Of a DNA stretch of 64,000 nucleotides, positions 19,348 through 45,779 are shown piece by piece. Position 1 is the first letter of the stretch. Each line of letters opens with the position of its first letter. This DNA comes from Macrostomum lignano (lineage: Eukaryota). The notes beneath the pieces are model-generated. The model ran no database searches and was not told the origin of the DNA. It was given only the letters and a program-made list of their open reading frames with translations. The position numbers and the translations under genes are program-made. Location: positions 62,001 through 126,000 of the forward strand of contig NIVC01000440.1 in assembly GCA_002269645.1 (NCBI GenBank), written 5' to 3'.

Positions 19348-24149
<4,802 letters not shown>

Positions 24150-25269: not shown

Positions 25270-28200
25270 AATGTCTGGACACCTCAAAATCCGCCCGAAA
25301 GAATCTCCGGACACCCTAAAATCTCCGGACATCCCAGAATCCGCCCGAAAGAATCTCCGGACACCCAGAATCCGCCCGAAAGAATCTCCGGACACCCAGA
25401 ATCCGCCCGAATGAATCTCCGGACACCCAGAATCCGCCCGAAAGAATCTCCGGACATCCCAGAATCCGCCCGAAAGAATCTCCTGACATCCCAAAATCTC
25501 CCTGAAAGAATCTCCGGACATCCCAGAATCCGTCCGAAAGAATCTCCGGACATCCCAAAATCTCCCTGAAAGAATCTCCGGACACCCAGAATCCGCCCGA
25601 AAGAATCTCCGGACACCCAGAATCCGCCCGAAAGAATCTCCGGACATCCCAAAATCTCCCTGAAAGAATCCCCGGACATTCCAGAATCCGCCCGAAAAAA
25701 TCCCCGGACATCCCAGAATCCGCCCAAAAAAATCTCCGGACATCCCATAATCCGCCCGAAAGAATCTCCGGACATCCCAGAATCCGCCCGAAAGAATCTT
25801 CGGACATCCCAGAATCCGCCCGAAAGAATCTCCGGACACCCAGAATCCGCCCGAAAAAATCCCCGGACATCCCAGAATCCGCCCGAAAGAATCTCCAGAC
25901 ATCCCAGAATCCGCCCGAAAGAATCTCCGGACACCCAGAATCCGCCCGAAAAAATCCCCGGACATCCCAGAATCCGTCCAAAAGAATCTCCGGACATCCC
26001 AAAATTTGCCCGAAAGAATCTCCGGACACCCAGAATCCGCCCGAAAAAATCCCCGGACATCCCAGAATCCGTCCAAAAGAATCTCCGGACATCCCAGAAT
26101 CCGTCCGAAAGAATCTCCGGACATCCCAGAATCCGTCCGAAAGAATCTCCGGACATCCCAGAATCCGTCCAAAGAATCTCCGGACATCCCAGAATCCGTC
26201 CGAAAGAATCTCCGGACATCCCAGAATCCGTCCGAAAGAATCTCCGGACATCCCAAAATCTCCCTGAAAAAATCTCCAGACACCCAGAATCCGCCCGAAA
26301 GAATCTCCGGACACCCAGAATCCGCCCGAAAGAATCTCCGGACATCCCAAAATCTCCCTGAAAGAATCCCCGGACATTCCAGAATCCGCCCGAAAAAATC
26401 CCCGGACATCCCAGAATCCGCCCAAAAGAATCTCCGGACATCCCAGAATCCGCCCGAAAGAATCTCCGGACATCCCAGAATCCGCCCGAAAGAATCTTCG
26501 GACATCCCAGAATCCGCCCGAAAGAATCTCCGGACACCCAGAATCCGCCCGAAAAAATCCCCGGACATCCCAGAATCCGCCCGAAAGAATCTCCGGACAT
26601 CCCAGAATCCGCCCGAAAGAATCTCCGGACATCCCAGAATCCGCCCGAAAAAATCCCCGGACATCCCAGAATCCGCCCGAAAGAATCTCCAGACATCCCA
26701 GAATCCGCCCGAAAGAATCTCCGGACACCCAGAATCCGCCCGAAAAAATCCCCGGACATCCCAGAATCCGTCCAAAGAATCTCCGGACATCCCAGAATCC
26801 GTCCAAAGAATCTCCGGACATCCCAGAATCCGTCCAAAGAATCTCTGGATATCCCAGAATCCGCCCGAAAGAATTTCCGGACATCCCAAAATCTCCGCGA
26901 AAGAATCTTCTGACATCCCAGAATCCGCCCGAAAGAATCTCCGGACATCCCAGACTCCGCCCGAAAGAATCTCCGGACATCCCAGAATCCGCCCGAAAGA
27001 ATCTCCGGACATCCCAGAATCCGTCCGAAAGAATCTCCGGACATCCCAGAATCCGCCCGAAAGAATCTCCGGACATCCCAGAATCTGCCCGAAAGAATCT
27101 CCGGACACCCAGAATCCGCCCGAATGAATCTCCGGACATCCCAGAATCCGCCCGAAAGAATCTCCGGACACCCAGAATCCGCCCGAAAGAATCTCCTGAC
27201 ATCCCAAAATCTCCCTGAAAGAATCTCCGGACACCCAAAATCCGCCCGAAAAAATCCCCGGACATCCCAGAATCCGCCCGAAAGAATCTCCGGACATCCC
27301 AGAATCCGCCCGAAAGAATCTCCGGACATCCCAGAATCCGCCCGAAAAAATCCCCGGACATCCCAGAATCCGCCCGAAAGAATCTCCAGACATCCCAGAA
27401 TCCGCCCGAAAGAATCTCCGGACACCCAGAATCCGCCCGAAAGAATCTCCTGACATCCCAAAATCTCCCTGAAAGAATCTCCGGACACCCAAAATCCGCC
27501 CGAAAAAATCCCCGGACATCCCAGAATCCGCCCGAAAGAATCTCCGGACATCCCAGAATCCGCCCGAAAAAATCCCCGGACATCCCAGAATCCGCCCGAA
27601 AGAATCTCCAGACATCCCAGAATCCGCCCGAAAGAATCTCCGGACACCCAGAATCCGCCCGAAAGAATCTCCTGACATCCCAAAATCTCCCTGAAAGAAT
27701 CTCCGGACACCCAAAATCCGCCCGAAAAAATCCCCGGACATCCCAGAATCCGCCCGAAAGAATCTCCGGACATCCCAGAATCCGCCCGAAAGAATCTCCG
27801 GACATCCAGAATCCGCCCGAAAAAATCCCCGGACATCCCAGAATCCGCCCGAAAGAATCTCCAGACATCCCAGAATCCGCCCGAAAGAATCTCCGGACAC
27901 CCAGAATCCGCCCGAAAAAATCCCCGGACATCCCAGAATCCGTCCAAAGAATCTCCGGACATCCCAGAATCCGTCCAAAGAATCTCCGGACATCCCAGAA
28001 TCCGTCCAAAGAATCTCCGGACATCCCAGAATCCGCCCGAAAGAATTTCCGGACATCCCAAAATCTACGCGAAAGAATCTTCTGACATCCCAGAATCCGC
28101 CCGAAAGAATCTCCGGACATCCCAGACTCCGCCCGAAAGAATCTCCGGACATCCCAGAATCCGTCCGAAAGAATCTCCGGACATCCCAGAATCCGCCCGA

Positions 28201-29515
28201 AAGAATCTCCGGACATCCCAGAATCCGCCCGAAAGAATCTCCGGACATCCCAGAATCTGCCCGAAAGAATCTCCGGACACCCAGAATCCGCCCGAATGAA
28301 TCTCCGGACATCCCAGAATCCGCCCGAAAGAATCTCCGGACACCCAGAATCCGCCCGAAAGAATCTCCGGACATCCCAGAATCCGCCCGAAAAAATCCCC
28401 GGACATCCCAGAATCCGCCCGAAAGAATCTCCAGACATCCCAGAATCCGCCCGAAAGAATCTCCGGACACCCAGAATCCGCCCGAAAGAATCTCCTGACA
28501 TCCCAAAATCTCCCTGAAAGAATCTCCGGACACCCAAAATCCGCCCGAAAAAATCCCCGGACATCCCAGAATCCGCCCGAAAGAATCTCCGGACATCCCA
28601 GAATCCGCCCGAAAAAATCCCCGGACATCCCAGAATCCGCCCGAAAGAATCTCCAGACATCCCAGAATCCGCCCGAAAGAATCTCCGGACACCCAGAATC
28701 CGACCGAAAGAATCTCCTGACATCCCAAAAACTCCCTGAAAGAATCTCCGGACACCCAAAATCCGCCCGAAAAAATCCCCGGACATCCCAGAATCCGCCC
28801 GAAAGAATCTCCGGACATCCCAGAATCCGCCCGAAAGAATCTCCGGACATCCCAGAATCCGCCCGAAAAAATCCCCGGACATCCCAGAATCCGCCCGAAA
28901 GAATCTCCAGACATCCCAGAATCCGCCCGAAAGAATCTCCGGACACCCAGAATCCGCCCGAAAAAATCCCCGGACATCCCAGAATCCGTCCAAAGAATCT
29001 CCGGACATCCCAGAATCCGTCCAAAGAATCTCCGGACATCCCAGAATCCGTCCAAAGAATCTCCGGACATCCCAGAATCCGCCCGAAAGAATTTCCGGAC
29101 ATCCCAAAATCTCCGCGAAAGAATCTTCTGACATCCCAGAATCCGCCCGAAAGAATCTCCGGACATCCCAGACTCCGCCCGAAAGAATCTCCGGACATCC
29201 CAGAATCCGTCCGAAAGAATCTCCGGACATCCCAGAATCCGCCCGAAAGAATCTCCGGACATCCCAGAATCCGCCCGAAAGAATCTCCGGACATCCTAGA
29301 ATCTGCCCGAAAGAATCTCCGGACACCCAGAATCCGCCCGAATGAATCTCCGGACATCCCAGAATCCGCCCGAAAGAATCTCCGGACACCCAGAATCCGC
29401 CCGAAAGAATCTCCTGACATCCCAAAATCTCCCTGAAAGAATCTCCGGACACCCAAAATCCGCCCGAAAAAATCCCCGGACATCCCAGAATCCGTCCGAA
29501 AGAATCTCCGGACAT
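25270..29515. repeat. ~4.25-kb satellite-like array of 31/32-bp units (CCGGACATCCCAGAATCCGCCCGAAAGAATCT) with higher-order variant blocks
   Basis: Directly visible; the 900-1400 aa ORFs here are artefacts. Confidence 0.98.
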
Positions 29516-29661
29516 CTCAGAATTGTCGGTCCCTTAGAGCGGCCTCATAGTTTTTTTTGTAAAAAAGCTGGATTAGGCATTGAATTTCACAGAGCTGCCA
29601 TTGCAACATTCGCTTCGAAAAAAACTTCTTTGATGCAGAAATTAACTGACAGCTACTCAGC

Positions 29662-31284
29662 ATGGCATTCTGGAAGAAGCCAACAGTGCAGGAGCAGATG
29701 CGGGCCAACGATCGGGAGCTGAAGAAGACCCAGCGAGATCTGGAACGCGACCGGGGCCATCTGGAGCGCGAGGAGAAACGCATCGAAGGGGAGATTAAAA
29801 AAGCAGCAAAGCAGGGCAACAAGGAGGCCTGCTCGGTGCTGGCGAAACAGCTGGTCCGCCTGCGGCAGCAGAAGACCCGCAGCTACGCTATGGGCAGCAA
29901 AGTGTCCGCTGTTGGCACTCAACAGAAAGTGATGGGCGCCAATTTGAAAATGGCCGACGCTATGAAGACCACGACAAAGACTATGGGCCAGATGAATAAA
30001 GCGATGTCGCCGGAGGACACCATGAAAACTATGCGTCAGTTTCAGGAGTCCAACATGAAGATGGAGATGTCCGAGGAGACTATGAACGAAGCTTTGGACG
30101 ACATTTTTGCCGGCTCGGATGATGAAGCTGAGCAGGATAAGGTGAGAGGCTGGACTGTGATCAATAGTAATCCCATAGGATTATTAGCAATAGATTTCAT
30201 GTTTTTCCTATTAGATTTCATATTTATCCCAATGGAAAATCCATATTTTTCCACATTCAGGATCCATATCTATCGCAATTAAAAATTTATATTTATCCCA
30301 ATTGAAAATCCATATTTATACCTATTCAGAATTCATATTTATCCCGATTTGGAATCCATATTTATCCTTATTCAGTGAAGAGTTTATTGGGTGGTGATGA
30401 GTCACTCAATAACTCCCTACGTCCGAAACGTAACGGATAACTCAATTCAAATCAATAATCCTCTAGGAATGTATCCTAGGAAACAAGGAGGCCTGTCTCA
30501 AATGTGTCGACAATCAATGGCTCTCGTAATCTCAATTAATCAACTTATTAGCGCTAGTAACAAATAACTAAATCGGGTAAACGCTTACGAATCGGTCCGG
30601 ATTTCTTCTCTCAGAGATGGGTCTTCTTAGTTGACGTATTCCAAGGTATTCCTTGAGACCTCTCTGAGTCTGAAGGGGTCATGCATGTTTGATCGTTTCC
30701 ATATATGGAATTAAGCAAATACAACTCCCGAGAACCGGTTCCTTGATCAAATAAACGTCGGTCCTACGTAGGGCTCTGAGTCACTTCTGTTTGCACGTGA
30801 CTCATTCTAAAAATAGAATTTATAAAAATAGATATGACTCATCATGACTCATTCTAAAATTAGATTGCGAGTTTAAATTAATTTTATTAGAATATTATAT
30901 TAGGTAGTGCGTTCTGATATGATTTACAGTTCTCTACATCAGAATCCATATTTATCCCCATTCAGAATCCATATTTATCCCCATTCAGAATCCATATTTA
31001 TCCGGTATCCCCATTCAGAATCCATATTTATCCCCATTCAGAATCCATATTTATCCCACTCAAAATCGAGTTCCCTATCATATTGCACATGACTCCCATA
31101 CCCATCAACCAACTCCCGCCAGGTAGTGGCCCAAGTCCTAGATGAAATCGGCATCGACATGAATGCCCAGATGTCCAAGGCGCCGTCTACGTCGGCAGCA
31201 ACGCCGGGGGCAGCCGCAGCCTCATCTAGCAAAGACGATGACGAAGAGATGCTGAAAAGGCTGGCCGGACTCTCCGCACCTTGA
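29662..31284 (+). CDS. CHMP2B: Charged multivesicular body protein 2B (ESCRT-III), 213 aa
   Basis: Exons 29662-30141 and 31123-31284. NKEACSVLAKQLVRLRQQKTR...MKMEMSEETMNEALDDIFAGSDDE...VAQVLDEIGI matches CHMP2B. Confidence 0.95.
30230..31060. repeat. 23-bp intronic repeat (ATCCATATTTATCCCCATTCAGA) in two blocks separated by ~550 bp of unrelated sequence
   Basis: Blocks at ~30230-30372 and ~30940-31060. Confidence 0.8.
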
Positions 31285-31876
31285 GAACAGTGTTTTTGCT
31301 CGATGGACTCAGGTCTAGAAGCAAAGGCTGCCTTTTCAAATCAATATTTTGTATAAAATTTAAATAGCAATTTACTTTTTGTCTGCTATAAGTAGTATTG
31401 AGCATAAATCCGCGCTATTTTCGGTCGGAAAATATTCTAAATAAAAGCAGCCTTTGCGCCGTTTTCTAACCAAAACACATAACTGCTCGCAAACTGCTGG
31501 TGGTGTAGAATATTTGATAAAATCTGTGATTTCATGTTTCACTATCATTTATTCAAGCGAGTGTCTGAGTCCAATTAAACTAAATCTATCCGGATGTGAA
31601 TGTGACATACTTCTGCTATTTGCTGTCTAAAGTGAATGGTTCAAATTTCAAATGAGTCCCTGTCTTTTGTTTGTAGCAAAAATATTTATTCTGTTCAATA
31701 TTTATTTACTCTGTTTGCGTCTGCTTTTTTAATAATAATTTTGCCCCATCATTTTATTCAGACTAAAATAAGTGCATTGCTTTAAGTGATCAGTTTTATT
31801 AAAATTATCGTAGAGGTTTATTAACTTCTTTCTATTTTAAATCAGGTTTATAACGTGTACTCGATTAAAAAAGTTT

Positions 31877-32560
31877 GCTAGATTAGCAATCCATTCTATT
31901 CCTTCAGGGATGTTGGCTAGATTAGCAATCCTTTCTATTCCTTTAGTGGTGTTGGCTAGATTAGCAATCCATTCTAAATTCCTTCAGTGATGTTGGCTAG
32001 ATTAGCAATCCATTCTAAATTCATTCAGTGTTGTTGGCTAGATTAGCAATCCATTCTATTCCTTCAGGGATGTTGGCTAGATTAGCAATCCATTCTAAAT
32101 TCATTCAGTGTTGTTGGCTAGATTAGCAATCCATTCTATTCCTTCAGGGATGTTGGCTAGATTAGCAATCCATTCTAAATTCATTCAGTGATGTTGGCTA
32201 GATTAGCAATCCATTCTATTCCTTTAGTGATGTTGGCTAGATTAGCAATCCATTTTATTCCTCCAGTGATGTTGGCTAGATTAGCAATCCATTCTAAATT
32301 CATTCAGTGATGTTGGCTAGATTAGCAATCCATTATATTCCTTTAGTGATGTTGGCTAGATTAGCAATCCATTCTATTCCTTTAGTGATGTTGGCTAGAT
32401 TAGCAATCCATTTTATTCCTCCAGTGATGTTGGTTGGCTAGATTAGCAATCCATTATATTCCTTTAGTGATGTTGGCTAGATTAGCAATCCATTTTATTC
32501 CTCCAGTGATGTTGGCTAGATTAGCAATCCATTCTATTCCTTCATTGATGTTGGCTGGAT
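31877..32560. repeat. 39/41-bp intergenic minisatellite (TGTTGGCTAGATTAGCAATCCATTCTATTCCTTCAGTGA)
   Basis: About 17 copies between CHMP2B and CIAO1. Confidence 0.95.
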
Positions 32561-32570
32561 AGCTGGCTAG

Positions 32571-32880
32571 GGGTTGTAGCCTAGTGGTTCGTGTCGCACT
32601 CATGACTTGAAGGTCGGGGGTTCGATTCCTGATCCCACTGGAACATTTTGTGTCCTTGAGCAAGCCATTTAACTCTGCATGGCTTCAGTTCACCCTGCTG
32701 TAAAATGGGTGCCAGCATTAGCTGGGATAACTGAGGGTGTGCGTGGCGACCCCTCCCCCCAGTCCTTGGACTGAACAGCCGTACGCAGCCTTCAGATGCA
32801 CCGCGCAATAGCTGTGGCTGAGCTGTCGGTTGCACATCTGGCTGAATTGAGGCAGGTGTTGTCAATTGTTATTATTATTA
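32571..32880 (+). mobile_element. tRNA-headed SINE with CORE-like central domain, (ATT)n tail and 7-bp TSD
   Basis: A box TAGCCTAGTGG; B box GGTTCGATTCC; TGTGTCCTTGAGCAAG..TTAACTCT...CTGTAAAATGGG; tail TTATTATTATTA; TGGCTAG at 32564-32570 and 32881-32887; second copy at 53303-53585. Confidence 0.85.
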
Positions 32881-32969
32881 TGGCTAGATTAGCAATCCAT
32901 TTTACTTCTTAACGAATGTTACCTAGAATTTTTTTCCGGAATATATATTTGGAAAAAATACTTGTAACG

Positions 32970-32986
32970 TGCTACTCACCCCGCAG
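32970..32986 (+). promoter_or_regulatory. 3' splice acceptor in front of the ATG-less CIAO1 ORF (candidate trans-splice site)
   Basis: TGCTACTCACCCCGCAG|GCC; in-frame TAG at 32924-32926 with no in-frame ATG in between. Confidence 0.6.
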
Positions 32987-33639
32987 GCCTCAGTAGTATC
33001 ATTAGCGCAGACCCTAGACGGCCACTCGGACAGGGTGTGGTGCGTCGCTTGGTCACCCGACGGCCGATTGTTGGCCACCTGCGGCGGGGATAAAACTATT
33101 CGCCTGTGGCAGTGCGAGCTGAGCACAGATCAAAGCAACAACAGGCGCTTGAGTCACTGCGACACCCTGAGTGGCGAGCACCACCGAACCATTCGATCTG
33201 TCGCCTTCTCGCCCTGCAGTAGACGATTGGCCTGCGGCAGCTTCGATGCAACTATTACAGTTTATAGCAGGCAGGACGGCGAGGTTGGGAGTCGATTCGA
33301 ATCCGTGGCCAAGCTGGAGGGTCACGAGAACGAGGTCAAGGACGTGGCCTGGTCCCCGTCGGGTCACTATCTGGCCACGTGCGGACGGGACAAGAGTCTG
33401 TGGGTGTGGGAAAGTGAGTTTTCTCGCCTGCGTTCGTGTTGCTTCAATGAATTTTTCGCTACATATCGGCTGGCTAGGCTATTGGTTGAGAATGATTGAA
33501 TTGATTGAGACAGACTGGCAGACAGGCATACAGACAGAGAGACAGACAGACACACACAGACAGACAGGCAGACAGACAGACAGACAGACAGACACACACA
33601 GACAGACAGGCAGACAGACAGACAGACAGACAGACACAC

Positions 33640-33682
<43 letters not shown>

Positions 33683-33698
33683 CACACAGACAGACAGG

Positions 33699-33748
<50 letters not shown>

Positions 33749-34116
33749 GGCAGGCAGGCAGACAGACAGACAGACAGACACACAGGCAGACAGACACTAA
33801 GACAGACAGGCAGACAGACACACAGGCAGACAGACAGACACTAAGACAGACAGGCAGACAGACAACCAAACAAACAGACGCGCATTTGCCCTATCGAATG
33901 TACTTATCAGATTATTTATTAGCTAAGCTAATCTTTTCAATTTTTTGCAGTGGACGACGACTCGGACTTTCAGTGCCTGAGCGTCACTCAGCCGCACAGT
34001 CAGGACATCAAATGCGTGGTCTGGCATCCACAGTCCGAGGTGAGCATCTGCTTTTTCTGTTTTAGTGTCTGTCTGTCTCTGTGTCTGTCTGTCTGTCTGT
34101 CTGTCTATCTGTCTTA

Positions 34117-34180
<64 letters not shown>

Positions 34181-35867
34181 CACCTGTCCGCCCCCTTACC
34201 GCCAGATCCTGGCCACGGCCAGCTACGATGACACGCTGAAGCTACACCGAGAGGACGGCGACGACTGGTGCAGCTTCGCCACCCTGTCCGGCCACGAGTC
34301 CACGGTGTGGCGGGCGGCCTTCAGCCCGGACGGCAAGCGGCTGGCTTCGTGTAGCGCAGATCGAACTCTGCGCGTCTGGTCAGCGGCTGGCGCGCCTACG
34401 GATGGTCCGACAACCTGGCGGTGCGAGGCAACGCTGACGGGCGGACACGAGCTGCCGATTTTCTCTTGCAGCTGGTGGGTTTGGCTACTTTTAGTTTATG
34501 GTTATTTCCTGTAAAGAATACTGAATTGGTATCTGTCTGTTCATTCTGCGGGTATCTTTTCTTACGCTGGATATCTAGCGTCTATAGGTCTCTGGTCTCT
34601 CTGCAGATTTCTACTCTCTTTGCAGGTATCTATTCTCTATGCAAGTGTCTACTGTCTAGCCTCTCCTCGGCTGTCTACTCCATATCTACAGTTATCTACT
34701 CTCTATCTACAGTTATCTACTCCCTATCTACAGTTATCTACTCTCTATCTACAGTTATCTACTCCCTATCTACAGTTATCTACTCTCTATCTACAGTTAT
34801 CTACTCTCTATCTACAGTTATCTGCTCTCTATCTGCAGTTATCTACTCCCTATCTACAGTTATCTGCTCTCTATCTGCAGTTATCTACTCCCTATCTACA
34901 GTTATCTACTCTCCATCTACAGTTATCTACTCTCCATCTACAGTTATCTACTCTCTATCTACAGTTATCTACTCTCTATCTACAGTTATCTGCTCTCTAT
35001 CTGCAGTTATCTACTCCCTATCTACAGTTATCTACTCTCCATCTACAGTTATCTACTCTCCATCTACAGTTATCTACTCTCCATCTACAGTTATCTACTC
35101 TCCATCTACAGTTATCTACTTCCTATCTACAGTTATCTACTCTCTATCTACAGTTATCTACTCTCCATCTACAGTTATCTACTATCTATCTACAGTTATC
35201 TACTCTCTATCTACAGTTATCTGCTCTCTATCTGCAGTTATCTACTCCCTATCTACAGTTATCTACTCTTCATCTACAGTTATCTACTCTCCATCTACAG
35301 TTATCTACTCTCCATCTACAGTTATCTACTTCCTATCTACAGTTATCTACTTCCTATCTACAGTTATCTACTCTCTATCTACAGTTATCTACTCTCTATC
35401 TACAGTTATCTACTTCCTAGATCTACAGTTATCTACTTCCTAGATCTACAGTTATCTACTCTTTATCTACAATTATCTACGTCCTAGATCTACAGTTATC
35501 TCCTCTCTATCTACAGTTATCTACTCCCTATCTACAGTTACCTACTCTATCTACAGTTATCTACTCTCTATCTGCAGTTATCTACTCTATCTACAGCTAT
35601 CTCTGCAGCAACAAACACACTGCTCATTCTCATGCCCCAATCCGCAGGCACCCGTCGCGGGACTGGCTCTTGTCAGCTTCCCAGGACAACTCCATCTGCC
35701 TGTGGACAGCCAACACCGACTCCGGCTGCTGGGATCTCGTCGAACGAGTCGCCGACGCGCACTGCGAAGATGTCAACGATGTGAAATGGCATCCAACAAT
35801 TGACAACCTGTTTGTCAGTGTTGGCGACGACTGCCTGGTCAAAGTGTGGACCGTTGACTCTCGCTGA
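32987..35867 (+). CDS. CIAO1: Cytosolic iron-sulfur assembly WD40 protein CIAO1 (~335 aa; no genomic ATG found)
   Basis: Exons 32987-33413, 33951-34039, 34206-34474, 35648-35867. [65 protein letters not shown] are CIAO1 signatures. Confidence 0.93.
33505..33880. repeat. (CAGA)n intronic microsatellite
   Basis: Directly visible. Confidence 0.95.
34065..34180. repeat. (TCTG)n intronic microsatellite
   Basis: Directly visible. Confidence 0.95.
34675..35600. repeat. 21-bp intronic minisatellite (TCTACAGTTATCTACTCTCTA)
   Basis: About 44 copies; the STVIYSL / LQLSTLY ORFs are artefacts. Confidence 0.95.
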
Positions 35868-36385
35868 TCGCTTCTATGGCGTAGTATTGTTTAATCGTAG
35901 TTCCGAGGTTAGATTAGCAATCCACTATTAGTACCGAGCTATCAAGCATATAGCAACTCGACCTGTTTGAAATGCCTTCTCGATTTGTTGCATCAATTTG
36001 CATTCAATTTAATTATGATTTGCAAATTTTTAATAAATATATTTTAGCATTGTATTTTGCCACAGTACTACTTGTAGCGTGTCTAAGCGTTTATTTTACA
36101 ACCAAACTATAGTCAGAGGTCGCGAATTCGATGGTGTCCCTTGATATCTGAATTTGAAATGTATTAGTAAAATGCGATGGGAGACTAATTCAGGGGAGGT
36201 CTAGAGGGTCCAGAGTTCGATTCCTAAAGTTGCGTAGTTTCAATATCCGACCAAATGCCGTAACAACTACAATAGAACTTGATTTTGTACAAAATGCATG
36301 CGTTCCCTATAACCTTCTATTCGGTGATTAATATAAAAGTGCAAACCGAAAGTTTCCGAAGACAGACAGACAGAGGCAACAGAAC

Positions 36386-38685
36386 ATGTGCAGCGCGCCC
36401 TACAACCCGTCTGATTGGTCGGGAGGATTCCAGATGGATGATCAGCAGCAGCATCAGGCGCCAGTTTACTATGGCCAGCAGGATATGTAAGAATATAACA
36501 AAAATACTTTGCACTTCTTACTTTTCTTGTCCTGTGCAATGTCTTTCTTTCTTCTTTTCAAAAGGAACTTCGCCTCGTATGACTACGGAGCCGGCAGTCA
36601 GCCACAGCCGCAGCAGCAGCAGCAGCAGTTTTACGGCGCCGGCCATCAGCCATATCAGCCACAGCCTACAGCTGTATTCGATCCGTATGCTAACCACCCG
36701 GCCTACTCTGGCCAGATGTTCGTCCCGAGCAGCATTGGGAGTGCCAGCGGCGGCCCACCAGGCGACAAAGGACCCTCATCTGGTGGCGACAACTTCGAAG
36801 ATGAGCCGCCATTACTGGAGGAGCTGGGCATTAATTTTGATCATATTACTCAAAAGGTGGGTGTTTTTTAGACCTTTTATACTTGATTAGACAGGCTCTG
36901 AACAGACAGGTAGATTGATTAGACAGGCTCTGAACAGACAGGTAGATTGATTTAGACAGGCTCTAAACAGACAGGTAGATTGATTAGACAGGCTCTGAAC
37001 AGACAGGTAGATTGGTTAGACAGGCTCTGAACAAACAGGTAGATTGATTAGACAGACTCTGAACAAACAGGTAGATTGATTAGACAGACTCTGAACAGAC
37101 AGGTAGATTGATTAGACAGACTCTGAACAAACAGGTAGATTGATTAGACAGACTCTGAACAAACAGGTAGATTGATTAGACAGACTCTGAACAAACAGGT
37201 AGATTGATTAGACAGGCTCTGAACAAACAGGTAGATTGATTAGACAGGCTCTGAACAAACAGGTAGATTGATTAGACAGACTCTGAACAAACAGGTAGAT
37301 TGATTAGACAGACTCTGAACAGACAGGTAGATTGATTAGACAGACTCTGAACAAACAGGTAGATTGATTAGACAGACTCTGAACAGACAGGTAGATTGAT
37401 TAGACAGACTCTGAACAAACAGGTAGATTGATTAGACAGACTCTGAACAAACAGGTAGATTGATTAGACAGGCTCTGAACAAACAGGTAGATTGATTAGA
37501 CAGGCTCTGAACAAACAGGTAGATTGATTAGACAGACTCTGAACAAACAGGTAGATTGATTAGACAGACTCTGAACAGACAGGTAGATTGATTAGACAGA
37601 CTCTGAACAAACAGGTAGATTGATTAGACAGGCTCTGAACAAACAGGTAGATTGATTAGACAGACTCTGAACAGACAGGTAGATTGATTAGACAGACTCT
37701 GAACAAACAGGTAGATTGATTAGACAGACTCTGAACAAACAGGTAGATTGATTAGACAGACTCTGAACAAACAGGTAGATTGATTAGACAGACTCTGAAC
37801 AGACAGGTAGATTGATTAGACAGGCTCTGAACAAACAGGTAGATTGATTAGACAGACTCTGAACAAACAGGTAGATTGATTAGACAGACTCTGAACAGAC
37901 AGGTAGATTGGTTAGACAGGCTCTGAACAGACAGGTAGATTGGTTAGTTAGTGTAGACAGGTTTGTTCGATTAAGAAAAAAGACTCATTTAAATCAACAC
38001 TTTTGCGTGTTTTCAACTGCTTACTTTAAGTAGCCGCGTCGTATATTTGTCCGCCTTGCAGACCCTGATGGTGCTGAATCCGTTAAAACAAGCCGATATG
38101 GAGGCTATGAAAGACACGGACTTGGCTGGCCCTTTGGTGTTCTGTTTGGCCTTTGGTGGCGCTTTGCTACTGGTAATTTCATGTTTTTAAATCCTCACTT
38201 CTCTACTTACAGTAATAACAATGCTAGTAGTAAAAAAATTTGATTTTAATTTATAAAACCGCTAAAATTGTCAGACGGGCAAACTGCATTTTGGCTACAT
38301 CTACGGCATTGGCGTCACCGGCTGTCTAGCTCTGTACATGCTGCTCAACATGATGAACACCACGACTGTGCAGCTGACATCCGTCATGTCCACCCTTGGT
38401 TATTGTCTGCTGCCAATGTGTCTGCTGTCTTTGATGGCTGTTGTGGTGTCTCTGCGGTTAGTGGCGCTGCTGTTCTGCAGCCTGTTGGGTTTCTGAATGA
38501 CAGTTAGATAGATAGATTGATAGATTGATAGATTGATAGATTGATAGATTGATAGATTGATAGATGATAGATAGATAGAAAGATAGATAGATAGATACAG
38601 AGATAGATGATAGATAGATAGATAGATGATAGATAGATAGATTGATAGATTGATAGATTGATAGATGATAGATAGATAGATAGAT

Positions 38686-38722
<37 letters not shown>

Positions 38723-38999
38723 GATAGATAGATGGATAGATAGATAGATTGATTGATTGATTTATTTATTGATTGATTGATTGGTTTATTGGTGGACAGA
38801 TTATAACAGTAGAAATCATCTATTTAAACTCTGCAGCAGCCTTGCGGGCATCATACTCACCAGCTTGACGGTGGCCTGGTGCGCTTACTCGTCTAGTAAA
38901 TTATTCGTCAATGCCCTATCAATGGATCATCAACGCCTGCTAGTGGCCTATCCCTGCGCTCTGGTCTACGGAGTATTCGCACTGCTCACTGTGTTCTAA
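36386..38999 (+). CDS. YIPF5: Yip1 family Golgi/ER protein YIPF5 (~282 aa)
   Basis: Exons 36386-36486, 36565-36856, 38062-38172, 38275-38456, 38837-38999. [71 protein letters not shown]. Confidence 0.95.
36885..37945. repeat. 32-bp intronic minisatellite (GATTGATTAGACAGACTCTGAACAAACAGGTA)
   Basis: About 33 copies. Confidence 0.95.
38505..38790. repeat. (GATA)n/(GATT)n intronic microsatellite
   Basis: Directly visible. Confidence 0.95.
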
Positions 39000-39828: not shown

Positions 39829-42015
39829 CCTGGCTTCTTTAAAAGTTAGCACATACTCTTATCTCAGTAGTAAGTAGTGTGTTAGGAAAACAATCCCTAC
39901 TGACTGCTTTAAGCAAATCTCTGATTAATTTCTCCACCGCAATAATTGTTTTGGGCTATTTTAATTAGTAGCTATGCCTCTACTAGTATTCTGCGAATCC
40001 TACAGGATTTACTTATTGATTTATTTTATGCTGTGTGTAGAATAATAACAATGAGTTCGTCCCTCAGTCGCCGGCCCTTCCTGTAGTTGTCATGGTAACA
40101 GTTATTTTTTGCCGGTTTCAATGTTAGCTCGTATTTTGCCACTTTGGATTTTGGTAGTGCAAAAAATGTGCAGCAAAAATATATGCTTTGCGTGAATTCC
40201 CGCCGACTTGAATTTGGTCGTTTCTGATCTTCACCATAGAAATTGAACGTGCTTTTTATGCGCTAGTTTTTTACATAAATAATAGTGTGTAATTGCAGTG
40301 TGTGGGTTCCATTCTAAAGTTCAGTGTCGATGTGCATTATTTCGGCACATCTTCGAACACGACTAGATATACGAGTATATTCGAGCTAGTTCTATCAAGA
40401 AGTTTGAAACCTAAGATAATGTTCAAAGCACAAAAGAGAGAGAGATTGTACAAATTTCAGTGGAGGCAGGCAAATTTTAGCCACAAATTTCATTGAAGAA
40501 GGATGTTCTGGGATTCAAATTTGATGTGCCTTACCTTCTGAATCTTAGAATGTCACAATGAAGCAAACATTTTTGCTCTGAACAGCCTTTTTATTTCTCT
40601 CCTTGATCGAGTTAGACTATGTTAGAACCTATTGTGTATTGAACCCATTAGAGCGACTTTCTGGCGCAAAAAGACCATAGACATTAAAATATCAGCCGCT
40701 GTCATACATGAAAGAAAATAACTGGATTGCTCACTGTATGGGTCGAAAAAGCATTACTTTAATCCATGGCCGCAGTTGAAGTGGAACCTTCCAGTGATTA
40801 TTATAGTCTATGGCCAGCCAGCCCATACGGAGCTAATTCTAGCGCAACATCATGGCAAAAATCGTGCTATAGATACTTATCAACAGGCCTGCAGCTTCAA
40901 CTCGAGAACCCTACGTTGCTCGCAGTCCGACGGCGAAAAGGTGATGATGTCGAAAGCTACATGTACATTTACAGCCGCCGTCGCACCAACCCAGGTGTGC
41001 GCGAGACCAACTCCTCAAATAACCCACCCGGAAGCGTCATCAGAATCACCAGGTGTTCTGAAGTCTGTTGTCTTAAAATTCAATTTTAATTCTAGTTATT
41101 AGACTTGTTTTCTCTATGTTGATATGCTTACTATGGAACGTTATGTGCATTTATACATGTAAATTCTCAGCATCTACCGAGTGAGGGTGCAGAGATCGAC
41201 CAGTATCAACCAAATTACCCTGCAGGGCTGGGTTTCAAAACTTCAAAGAAAATGTGAAGAACTTTTCTGCACAGAATGCATGCACTAGCAGGGTAAAATA
41301 TAGAGCTGAAACTGAAATTCGGTGGGTGTTACAATTTTGAGCAGTTTTGGGCGGCCCCTGCAGCAGCTGCATCTTGTGTAGCTCTCAGCATCATTTGTAG
41401 CCCTTGGCACAAATAGATTGTTCTTCACGTATTTCATATAGGAGAAACTCACAATAGACAATATACAAAAAAGCTTTTGTTCATTGACTCACAAGAAATC
41501 TACCCTAGCCAATGGCTGCTTCCCACACACTCAACTGGAGTGTGGGTATGCAAAAATTTAGAAACCCTATATTTTTCTGCCTCATCATTCCTCGGTGAAA
41601 AAAAAACAGACAGCAACTCAACCGTCTTAGCATATGGAGTTTTCCGTCCACTCGCTCGCCCCATTAAAACTGCGGCATGCAGACCTGCTGTCACTAATAA
41701 AGTTTTCCACGTTGCAACGCTGCAATTCGGGCACAGATGAGCCGCTGGCTGCAGGGGGGGCACCGCACCAGCTCACACCGTGCTTACTCTGCTGTGCTCA
41801 CTGCACACAATAGGGTCAATGTACAGTCAGAGAGAAACATGAGAAAGGGTGGATAGAAGGACAGCGAAAACAACTCCTTCGCCTTCACACAGTTGCACGA
41901 ACGATTTTATTTAAGTAAGCCCCCACCGCTCCAGAGCGCAATAAGCTCCCCCCTGACTCTGTGCCTTCGCTTGCAGCCTCAGCTCAGACTTCTTACAGTG
42001 CAACTCCCATCAGCC

Positions 42016-42354
42016 ATGCAGCTGCTGCTTATCTCGCTGTTGCTGCCGTCCTTGGTGGCTGCCCAGAGCACCATGGAAACCACCACCAAGCCGATGGAGG
42101 CTACAACCACGCCGAATATCGGTGGCTTCACCAGCGACCAGCTGGGCGTGCTCATCGGGATCCCAGTTGCCCTGGTTATCATCATCATCATCGGTGTAAT
42201 AATCGGCTGCGTGGTGCAGCACAAGGTGCACCAGGAGGACAAGCTGCTGGAGGGCAAGCCCTACCAGGATCAGGGAGACGTTGGGACCGGCGGCAGCCAG
42301 GCCATGGGACGCAGCCCGTACTACAACGACTACCTGAGCCAGACGAAGAACTAA
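42016..42354 (+). CDS. Small type I membrane protein (112 aa): signal peptide, Thr-rich ectodomain, single TM, Tyr-containing tail
   Basis: MQLLLISLLLPSLVAA / STMETTTKPMEATTT / LGVLIGIPVALVIIIIIGVIIGCVV / ...SPYYNDYL; GC3-rich codons; acceptor CTTCTTACAG just upstream. Confidence 0.75.
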   Translation: MQLLLISLLLPSLVAAQSTMETTTKPMEATTTPNIGGFTSDQLGVLIGIPVALVIIIIIGVIIGCVVQHKVHQEDKLLEGKPYQDQGDVGTGGSQAMGRSPYYNDYLSQTKN

Positions 42355-42909: not shown

Positions 42910-45436
42910 TTAGGTCTCGGCGGCCAAGTAGCGGCGCAGCTCGGCATCCTCCTGATCGTGGACAAACTTATCAAACGCCTGCAAGCGTTGATGACGCTGC
43001 GGGTCGCTTTGAGTCTCATCATCATCATCAGCCTCCTCAGCTGCCAGCGCCGCCAGGCCGCTCTGCAATACAGAACAGAAAATATCTGCCTTATTGATGA
43101 CTAATCGTCATTAAGATTTAAGATTAATCAACTGAGCTCCTCACCTGCATGGTTGCATAATTTCTCTGATAATTAAACACCGCCCACATCAGGTGCCAAA
43201 CGGAGAAGTCTGGCCACATTGCGTTAACAAAGTGCACGCAGGTGAACTGGGTCTGCAATTGGATTAACGAAATTGAACTTGAAATTGAGCAGAGCCAGCT
43301 CAAAGTCTGAGGTAAACGTGACCCCTGGTTCGATTCCTGGTTCGGCTTGTATGTGCACGGTCGCCGAAGGCGTTGCGCTGGGTGCCTACAGGTCTTCTAC
43401 GTAGTTATTTTGCTGTTATCTAAAATTGAGTACTAATGCCGATATGTATCGAAAAAAACAATATACACTGAGCATTGTTTCCGAATACGAGAAGTTTGAA
43501 GCAGCTATCTTCATTTCATTGACTCCATAGCATACACAAGGGCACAAGGCAAACACTCACACAGCAGTGTATACTGTTTAGCAGCCCTGGAATTATTTAT
43601 CATCAGATGTCTACAATGCACTACTACTAGTAAAAATGCTAGTTCTTTTTATAAATTAACCAGCAGCCATACCTGCCACAGGAGAAAGTCAGACAGTCTG
43701 GTTTCGCCAGAGGTTCGTATCAGCAGGTCGGGCGGCCCCGGGGACAGGTAGGTGCGAGCGCACCGGTCTAGCAGGCGCGGCGTGACGTCATCTGGGAGCA
43801 GGAGGCCGGACCGGACAGCCTGGCCTGCCAAGGACACCGCGTGGGCCATGTCGTCGCGCGAGGTGTACGCGAAGCACACGTTTAGGCGGGCCTTGCTGTG
43901 CGAGCTGAGGGCGGCGAGGTGGGGATACGGGGAGGTGATAGCAGTATTCTTGATGAGTGCTGACTTCTAATTCTGCCGCTGAAGTAAACATTGCAGACCT
44001 GATTCGTTTGACTTTCTCCACTCTATGTGTCATTCTTGAACTGTTTCAACTGAAGAAACACACAATCTCCCAACCCACAACTTCCCAACCCAGAATGACC
44101 ACCAACCCACAACCTCCCAAACCAAGATCACCAAACCCAGAATCTCCTAACTCAATCTCCCAAACCACAAACTTCCAACCCAGAGTGACCCCAAGCCACA
44201 ATCTCCCAACCCAGAGTGACCCCAAGCTACAATCTCCCAACCCAGAATGACCCCAAGCTACAATCTCCCAACCCAGAATGACCCCAAGCTACAATCTCCC
44301 AACCCAGAATGACCCCAAGCTACAATCTCCCAACCCAGAATGACCCCAAGCTACAATCTCCCAACCCAGAATGACCCCAAGCTACAATCTCCCAACCCAG
44401 AGTGACCCCAAGCTACAATCTCCCAACCCAGAGTGACCCCAAGCCACAATCTCCCAACCCAGAGTGACCCCAAGCTACAATCTCCCAACCCAGAATGACC
44501 CCAAGCTACAATCTCCCAACCCAGAGTGACCCCAAGCCACAATCTCCCAACCCAGAGTGACCCCAAGCTACAATCTCCCAACCCAGAGTGACCCCAAGCT
44601 ACAATCTCCCAACCCAGAGTGACCCCAAGCCACAATCTCCCAACCCAGAATGACCCCAAGCCACAATCTCCCAACCCAGAATGACCCCAAGCTACAATCT
44701 CCCAACCCAGAATGACCCCAAGCTACAATCTCCCAACCCAGAATGACCCCAAGCCACAATCTCCCAACCCAGAATGACCCCAAGCTACAATCTCCCAACC
44801 CAGAGTGACCCCAAGCTACAATCTCCCAACCCAGAGTGACCCCAAGCTACAATCTCCCAACCCAGAGTGACCCCAAGCTACAATCTCCCAACCCAGAGTG
44901 ACCCAGGCAGCAGACCTGGTGGCCTGCATGACCCTGGCCGCAGCGGCCCTCAGATCGGCAGGCAGCAGTTGCAGATTGCCCAGCACCCGGACGCAGACCC
45001 CGTAGGCCCGGAGCCGGTCCAACTCCTGCAATAGTCGGTCGAATTTCTGCCTGGCCAGCCGCAAGAGGCCGGCCACCTCCTCGGCGCTCCTGTTGAAATT
45101 CTCGATGCTAAAAGCGTAGACGGTCACTTCGTTAATGCCCAGGTCGCGGCACCATTCCAGCACTTCGCCAACTTTTTGAAAGCCGCGCAGATGGCCCTGC
45201 GATTTCTGCAGGCCGTGACACCTGGCGAATCGCCTATTGCCGTCCATGATAATGGCCAGGTGGTTCAGCAGGGGTCCCTGACCCAGCATGGTCATGGACA
45301 AGCGCTGCATAGCTGTGTACTGCGCCCCAGTGCGAATCCATTCGTCCTCAGGGATGGCTGCGGAGTCTTGGCTGGTGTCCTGAGGCGGCTCCGCTGGCCC
45401 AGGAGAGGGGCCGGCAGTGGGCAATGGTTGGGATTG
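42910..45436 (-). CDS. DHDDS: cis-prenyltransferase / dehydrodolichyl diphosphate synthase catalytic subunit (~338 aa)
   Basis: Exons 45436-44916, 43904-43673, 43252-43145, 43062-42910. HLAIIMDGNRRFAR, VTVYAFSIENFNRS, LNVCFAYTSR, PDLLIRTSGETRLSDFLLWQ, WPDFS. Start codon unresolved. Confidence 0.93.
44065..44903. repeat. 31-bp intronic minisatellite (CAATCTCCCAACCCAGARTGACCCCAAGCTA)
   Basis: About 25 copies in the first DHDDS intron. Confidence 0.95.
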
Positions 45437-45779
45437 CTGCAAGTTGAACAGATACAGATAGATAGCTTAGTTAATGGCATTTTTGTAGGCAAAAACTGAG
45501 ATGGCTATGCCTATGTAAAGTGGGGGCAGTAGCCCAGTGTTCCAGGGTGGCGTTCTGCTGTGCCAGCAGCCCAGGCTCGATTCCAAGTGCAGTCACATTA
45601 AATTTGGGGCTGAATTAGAATCTTGGCTTGGCTCTGCTCGTGCAATTAACACCCAGCTTGAGGGCCAACCGGCCAACCCCCAAGGCACAGTGAAGTGTAC
45701 ATGCCTAACGATTAATAAAGTGCCTTAATAAAGTAAAAAGGGCTTGTGCTTGCTCAGGGAGTTGGTAGAATATGCAATA

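Follow-up and report, generated by a model that had tools for sequence, protein, structure and literature searches.

CIAO1 of the flatworm Macrostomum lignano very probably takes its start codon from the spliced leader

Spliced-leader start codons in flatworms

The use of the 3´-terminal AUG of a flatworm spliced leader (SL) as the initiator Met is credited to Cheng, Cohen, Ndegwa & Davis (J Biol Chem 2006) in later accounts (PMC9851317, PMC5832876), one of which relates that more than 40 Schistosoma mansoni cDNAs need the SL AUG (Cheng 2006, via PMC9851317). The same role of the SL AUG is repeated for tapeworms (PMC7653826) and for parasitic flatworms generally (PMC12582326). The SL-bearing cDNAs of Echinococcus granulosus fall into two classes: in one, an ATG of the gene itself follows the SL ATG within a few codons, and in the other, the SL ATG is required if the N-terminus is to match those of the orthologues (PMC3510090). 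M. lignano has a single 35-nt SL, CGGTCTCTTACTGCGAAGACTCAATTTATTGCATG, which ends in ...TTATTGCATG with ATG as its last three bases; in the SL RNA gene, a GTAAG donor comes next (PMC8629364). A terminal AUG, stated for flatworm SL exons in the initial annotation of the DNA described here together with its possible use as initiator, is present in this species as well. The final ATG of the Macrostomum SL has been called a translation start codon (PMC10468722). About 30% of M. lignano genes are trans-spliced, with an enrichment among genes conserved with human (PMC8629364), and the Mlig_3_7 annotation of the genome was guided by RNA-seq, with peaks of SL reads setting the 5´ ends (Wudarski 2017, PMC5730564).

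We analysed a 64-kb window of the M. lignano genome, which is identical to the contig from which it was taken (window position + 62000 = position on NIVC01000440.1, GCA_002269645.1) and which contains the gene for CIAO1. M. lignano CIAO1 has in common with the S. mansoni examples an SL with a terminal AUG, an acceptor in frame with the main ORF and a conserved N-terminus for which the genome holds no AUG. The two systems differ in order and in SL sequence, M. lignano being a free-living member of the Macrostomorpha, and experiments demonstrated translation from the SL AUG for the schistosome, whereas we infer it for M. lignano CIAO1. The papers cited here on schistosome SL-AUG mRNAs do not name CIAO1 as an example. 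The two classes known from Echinococcus both have candidates in the window, namely CHMP2B and YIPF, with a genomic ATG 4 codons downstream, and CIAO1, which would need the SL ATG; SL-bearing cDNAs are in hand for Echinococcus, whereas M. lignano CIAO1 is known from the genomic side alone. CIAO1 also shares with slORFs (slORFfinder, PMC9851317) an ORF that comes into being only through SL addition. In contrast, the slORFs of nematodes, ascidians and kinetoplastids mostly start with a near-cognate NUG and are often alternative or overlapping, whereas CIAO1 would be a canonical, conserved protein made from the SL AUG.

Like the annotated SL genes and operons of M. lignano (PMC5730564, PMC8629364), CIAO1 is a conserved housekeeping gene with close same-strand neighbours and an mRNA 5´ end on an AG. 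That particular genes might depend on the SL ATG for their start is not taken up in these two studies (Wudarski 2017; Ustyantsev & Berezikov 2021). M. lignano CIAO1 is very probably a new, very clean example of the known SL-AUG class and not a new mechanism, and the public annotation already records the Met-less CIAO1 implicitly as a 'partial' CDS.

The CIAO1 gene, its copies and its N-terminus

The following features of the CIAO1 locus are referred to below.

32924-32926, + strand: in-frame TAG that closes the CIAO1 frame, 21 codons 5´ of the first coding base (read directly)
32970-32986, + strand: pyrimidine-rich tract and AG acceptor, tgctactcaccccgcAG, the putative SL trans-splice acceptor
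32987-35867, + strand: CIAO1 gene, four exons, built from GT-AG junctions
32987-33413, + strand: exon 1, 142 codons and 1 base, ending WVWE, without an in-frame ATG
33508-33879: (AGAC)n in intron 1
33951-34039, + strand: exon 2, whose first two bases, TG, complete the sole internal Met codon
34066-34180: (TGTC)n in intron 2
34206-34474, + strand: exon 3
34674-35602: array of a 21-bp unit, 44 copies, in intron 3
35648-35867, + strand: exon 4, stop TGA at 35865-35867
36032-36037, + strand: likely poly(A) signal; no other AATAAA/ATTAAA hexamer occurs after the CIAO1 stop and before the next gene

All the CIAO1 introns are GT-AG, with GTGAGT directly 3´ of the exon 1 end at 33413, and the gene model comprises 1005 nt that encode 334 amino acids and a stop codon. 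The introns consist mostly of simple repeats, whose array lengths vary among the genomic copies of the gene. The CIAO1 exon begins at 32987, directly after the acceptor and in phase 0 (ctactcaccccgcAG/GCC TCA, with the slash marking the junction), as the initial annotation had read it. The TAG that it had placed in frame at 32924-32926 is confirmed by direct reading. This TAG and the acceptor CAG hold the only AG dinucleotides between the in-frame stop and CIAO1 codon 3, so that the position of the acceptor is unambiguous. The 20 codons between the two (32927-32986, NFFPEYIFGKNTCNVLLTPQ) contain no ATG, and the nearby ATG at 32916-32918 is out of frame, as had been claimed, because it lies 71 nt upstream of 32987.

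The claim that no in-frame ATG occurs for about 140 codons proved to be an understatement. The sole internal Met of the genomic ORF is residue 143, whose codon is split A/TG by intron 1 (33413/33951), and none of the four exons therefore holds a contiguous in-frame ATG. By a rough estimate, a Met-free run of 142 codons has an expectation of about 4% at a typical Met frequency. Such an ORF is not statistically remarkable by itself; what matters is that a conserved N-terminus sits directly on the acceptor with a stop codon upstream.

The locus encodes CIAO1, the WD40 component of the cytosolic Fe-S assembly targeting complex, with a predicted role in the delivery of Fe-S clusters to apoproteins of cytosol and nucleus. 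A search of a collection of 5.8 billion proteins returned a 100% identical 333-aa match, 'hypothetical protein BOX15_Mlig014354g2, partial [Macrostomum lignano]', and the protein is identical to M. lignano PAA75053.1/PAA82934.1 (100%), both annotated as 'partial' in GCA_002269645.1. The next matches are CIAO1/CIA1 proteins of animals, fungi and plants with 40-49% identity over 96-100% coverage. Among solved structures, the protein aligns to human CIAO1 (3FM0; E=1.3e-84, query 12-331 versus chain 12-332), Drosophila Ciao1 (6TBL/9UKY; E about 5e-82, query 7-332 versus chain 9-336 / 7-334) and yeast Cia1 (2HES; E=6.7e-62, query 5-333 versus chain 4-327), being collinear with the three over its full length. 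An alignment of 18 sequences has 45 invariant columns, and the invariant WD40 residues are kept in M. lignano CIAO1. When one Met is placed before ASVV..., this Met shares a column with the start Met of P0002, P0008, P0011 (Ciona) and P0050 (rotifer) in the 18-sequence alignment, and the conserved L-x-G-H...RVW block stands at an equal distance from the Met in M. lignano CIAO1 and in the orthologues. The protein then has exactly 335 amino acids, which agrees with the approximate length given by the initial annotation; its closest relatives are about 325-345 amino acids long.

CIAO1 is present in two further genomic copies, on NIVC01000906.1 (L001) and NIVC01000978.1 (L003), which makes three with the window copy (L002). 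The M. lignano genome is partly duplicated (PMC8629364), and extra CIAO1 copies are as expected. All three copies read ctcaccccgcag/GCCTCAGTAG, with the GCCTCA start directly on the acceptor, and all three hold the in-frame TAG; an ATG is found in 0/3. The acceptor tract of L001 is identical to that of the window. In L003 the third base of the tract is G instead of C, its sole substitution, and the final 14 nt, including the CAG, are identical in 3/3 copies. The CDS is intact with canonical GT-AG introns in every copy; L001 equals the window, and L003 differs at 6/1005 positions, of which three changes are synonymous and three nonsynonymous. No second M. lignano CIAO1 cluster is found among the matches of the homologue search, and thus no ATG-bearing copy is on record for the species.

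The public protein models agree with this start. All five M. lignano CIAO1 models (5/5) are Met-less and start within 3 nt of the acceptor: three GenBank proteins start with SVVS (acceptor +3), UniProt A0A1I8H2Q7 starts with ASVVS (at the acceptor) and A0A1I8GKD2 starts with QASVVS (acceptor -3). The +3 offset is constant for the CIAO1 GenBank models in all copies. We considered a constant +3 distance between acceptor and CDS as proof of an SL-defined 5´ end and rejected it: the annotated 5´ ends are approximate, with CHMP2B models starting at +3 in the window and +6 in L001, and the CDS of a 161-aa gene in the window does not start at an AG. Neither the Met-prefixed CIAO1 nor the 334-aa form has an exact match in the protein collection, and the 90% cluster of CIAO1 has no transcript-derived members. 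The gene is absent from the supplements of PMC5730564, PMC8629364, PMC5173321 and PMC5816591, and a full-text literature search with its locus tag returned no paper. For P0002, the closest non-Macrostomum relative (a JGI contig), the transcript begins with ordinary AT-rich sequence, carries no SL and is uninformative.

A gene with no start codon of its own might also make no full-length protein, either because it is decaying or because translation begins at the Met encoded across the exon 1/2 junction (residue 144 when counted from the SL Met) and yields a truncated product. The context of this Met is strong (GAAAUGG), and the three synonymous and three nonsynonymous changes between paralogues give no clear signal of purifying selection. 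Against these points stand the intact ORF and canonical introns in 3/3 copies, the 42-51% identity to CIAO1 proteins of eukaryotes along the full length, with the invariant WD40 residues kept, and the lack of any other CIAO1 gene on record for M. lignano, CIAO1/Cia1 being an essential component of the CIA pathway. A protein begun at Met144 would moreover be without blades 1-2 and some of blade 3, and also without the N-terminal strand, whose alignment with yeast Cia1 begins at residue 5. We regard the loss of the full-length protein as very improbable. The comparison of exons and introns between paralogues is not used in this argument: the unique parts of the introns are 98-99% identical and the exons 99.5-100%, so introns are nearly as conserved, and we make no claim of purifying selection because the numbers are too small; of the paralogue comparisons we draw solely on that of the 107-nt 5´ flank with exon 1 (below).

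Source of the initiator codon

We propose that CIAO1 translation very probably starts at the terminal AUG of the trans-spliced leader. The CIAO1 pre-mRNA would be trans-spliced at the acceptor ending at 32986, and the 35-nt SL, with AUG as its last three bases, would be joined directly to GCC UCA GUA (junction ...TTTATTGCATG/GCCTCAGTAGTATC). Since the acceptor is in phase 0, SL-ATG/GCC TCA reads MASVVS.... The SL AUG would be the first AUG of the mRNA, at nt 33-35 in the context UGCAUGG (...UUGCAUG/GCC UCA), and would open a 335-codon ORF for the full-length, seven-blade WD40 protein. The later AUGs of the SL-joined mRNA are an out-of-frame AUG at nt 295 and the junction-encoded, in-frame AUG at nt 462. 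The genome supplies every CIAO1 codon but the initiator, so that full-length CIAO1 would require trans-splicing. Two features are less favorable. The SL AUG has a weak U at -3, which counts against it as a start. The CIAO1 site, CCGCAG, has the CAG core of the enriched motif [T/C]TNCAG and lacks the T at position 2. The motif is present at just 9,551/21,754 known M. lignano trans-splice sites (about 44%; PMC8629364) and so does not define the trans-splice class. No SL RNA gene or SL-like sequence is found within the 64-kb window, and no Rfam families or tRNAs (ARAGORN) were called in it.

The DNA between CIAO1 and the next gene upstream bears on the other possible sources of a start codon.

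29656-31284, + strand: CHMP2B (Snf7 family), the upstream same-strand gene, annotated as a 5´-partial CDS
31873-32560, + strand: satellite of a 39-bp unit, GTTGGCTAGATTAGCAATCCATTCTATTCCTTCAGTGAT, 17 copies, forming most of the presumed outron/intergenic interval
32561-32879, + strand: SINE-like insertion with a tRNA-like head (ggctaggggttgtagcctagtggtt...ggttcgattcc)

The interval upstream of CIAO1 (about 1.7 kb) is made up of the satellite and the SINE-like insert of about 320 bp, which splits the last satellite unit from the array. The insert is present in the window and in L001 and absent from L003, and is therefore a copy-specific insertion; it is not called as a tRNA by ARAGORN nor by Rfam. 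In L003, the satellite array extends to about 90 nt from the acceptor. The satellite core, TAGATTAGCAATCCA, occurs at 32885-32899, and a solitary copy lies at 35910-35924, 43 nt after the CIAO1 stop, so that the motif brackets the gene.

The ATG could be supplied by a cis-spliced 5´ exon farther upstream, with 32986 as an ordinary intron acceptor and the exon missed by the annotations owing to the repeats. The sequence of an acceptor cannot by itself tell cis- from trans-splicing, flatworms use common acceptors for both (PMC12582326), and read mapping is harder in an interval that is repetitive and exists in three near-identical copies. We searched 31285-32960 for such exons. This search gave 30 ATG...GT candidates, in frame and free of stops; the GT[G/A]AG donor, a mark of 65% of M. 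lignano introns (PMC8629364), is lacking in all 30. The sole exon that ends in ATG/GT (at 31636) has the donor GTTCAA, and the candidate with the highest score falls within the SINE-like insert, absent from L003. An exon within the upstream CHMP2B would make a fusion protein. Two independent RNA-guided annotations agree, for all three copies, in showing no exon 5´ of the acceptor. An upstream cis exon is very unlikely on this evidence, and the SL remains the favored source of the AUG.

The 5´ flank was also compared between copies. Window and L003 differ by 5 substitutions and a 3-nt indel in the 107 nt 5´ of the acceptor, and by 2 substitutions across exon 1 (427 nt), a contrast which fits a coding sequence that starts at the acceptor. 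Between copies, the divergence of the 60 nt directly before the acceptor is about ten times that of exon 1, which argues against a second source of the N-terminus, namely a non-AUG start in transcripts that retain the sequence 5´ of 32987. The frame is indeed open from 32927, an in-frame GTG (32969-32971) stands 6 codons before the acceptor, and near-cognate initiation exists in eukaryotes (PMC9851317). Scanning ribosomes, however, would be captured by out-of-frame ATGs at 32880 and 32916, the extra N-terminal residues would have no counterpart in orthologues, and all the annotated CIAO1 mRNAs begin at the acceptor. We give a start of this kind very little credence.

The proposal of the initial annotation that CIAO1 translation depends on trans-splicing is thus strongly supported by the phase of the acceptor, the register of the N-terminus, the agreement of the three copies and of the public models, and the search for upstream exons. 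From the genomic sequence we strongly infer both steps, the joining of the SL at 32986/32987 and the start of the ribosome at the SL AUG. With the SL AUG in place, the CIAO1 CDS is complete in spite of its 'partial' label. Flatworm annotation pipelines should add the SL ATG where an ORF opens at a trans-splice acceptor; BUSCO-style completeness scores and the N-termini of orthologues are affected. M. lignano is tractable for transgenesis, and the CIAO1 outron with its acceptor would therefore make a compact reporter for SL-dependent translation.

Neighboring genes, DHDDS and tandem repeats

CIAO1 lies between CHMP2B and a second same-strand gene.

36386-38999, + strand: YIPF (Yip1 family), the downstream same-strand gene, with a genomic ATG at 36386
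41869-42354: CDS of 161 amino acids annotated as 5´-partial (BOX15_Mlig031473g2-like)

An acag acceptor at 29652/29653 lies 3 nt before the annotated CHMP2B CDS. This candidate acceptor reads acag/CTACTCAGCATG (window 29650-29664), ending in an ATG, and that of YIPF reads acag/AGGCAACAGAACATG (36373/36374, window 36370-36388). Either acceptor, if used, would bring the SL ATG into frame, and the genomic ATG would follow four codons later. If both flanking acceptors are used, three consecutive genes would carry an in-frame SL AUG.

M. lignano operons have been defined as groups of trans-spliced genes on one strand with, once repeats are subtracted, less than 1 kb between them (PMC8629364). CHMP2B, CIAO1 and YIPF are arranged head to tail on the + strand, with a repeat-adjusted spacing below 1 kb when their poly(A) sites are taken from predicted hexamers. 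From the CHMP2B hexamer at 31440 to the acceptor at 32986 the distance is about 1.5 kb, of which about 1.0 kb is satellite and SINE-like insert, and from the CIAO1 hexamer at 36032 to the YIPF ATG at 36386 it is about 350 nt. The older UniProt models A0A1I8GKD2 and A0A1I8H2Q7 (P0122, P0128) fuse CIAO1 to YIPF (window 35830-36390): the final exon of CIAO1 is cut short at a cryptic donor (..DDCL/ or ..LVK/) and joined to the acag/AGGCAACAGAAC acceptor before YIPF. These fusion models could reflect polycistronic RNA or an artefact of prediction, and are only suggestive of operon co-transcription. The 'g2' of Mlig014354g2 was considered as a label for the second gene of an operon and rejected. The YIPF copies are tagged Mlig023227g1, Mlig023227g2 and Mlig014384g1 and CHMP2B is tagged Mlig010417g1, and it follows that the tag prefix denotes a sequence cluster and that gN is silent on position.

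The 5´-partial CDSs of CHMP2B, the 161-aa gene and DHDDS each hold an internal in-frame ATG near the 5´ end. In the 161-aa CDS, this Met precedes the signal-peptide-like MQLLLISLLLPSLVAAQS, which is followed by one transmembrane segment. The product is probably a small type-I membrane protein whose real start is the internal Met, with the annotated 5´ extension being untranslated leader.

The DHDDS/cis-prenyltransferase gene is also present in three copies. Two of them (L007 and L008) read aacttCATG/CAATCC, which provides a genomic ATG and a 337-aa protein. The window copy (45436-45442, - strand) reads aacttGCAG/CAATCC, with a perfect [T/C]TNCAG motif in place of the ATG, and GenBank gives it as a 329-aa 5´-partial CDS. 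Joining the SL at this site would, through its ATG, give back exactly the MQSQPLPTAGP... protein. Translation could also begin at a Met in the same frame, about 43 codons further on and directly ahead of the conserved IIMDGNRRF motif. One of the three copies (1/3) has thus swapped the ancestral ttCATG for ttGCAG at exactly the position from which the SL can restore the start, and we offer it as a possible case of ongoing start-codon loss.

A broader reading is tentative, and on balance we consider it doubtful: that an obligate SL-supplied start is fixed in all the copies of CIAO1, an essential gene with a single function, that trans-splicing has thereby become indispensable for cytosolic Fe-S assembly, and that it may license the ongoing loss of start codons. 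An essential housekeeping gene that has ceded its initiator to a trans-acting RNA in all copies would illustrate how SL trans-splicing becomes irreversible.

Three further tandem arrays lie upstream of CHMP2B in the window.

21109-21780: array of a 52-bp unit
22187-23434: (CTGT)n array, 1.2 kb
25320-29523: array of a 32-bp unit, 4.2 kb, about 133 copies with 90% matches and a strong GC and AT skew

The array of the 32-bp unit ends about 130 nt before the CHMP2B acceptor.
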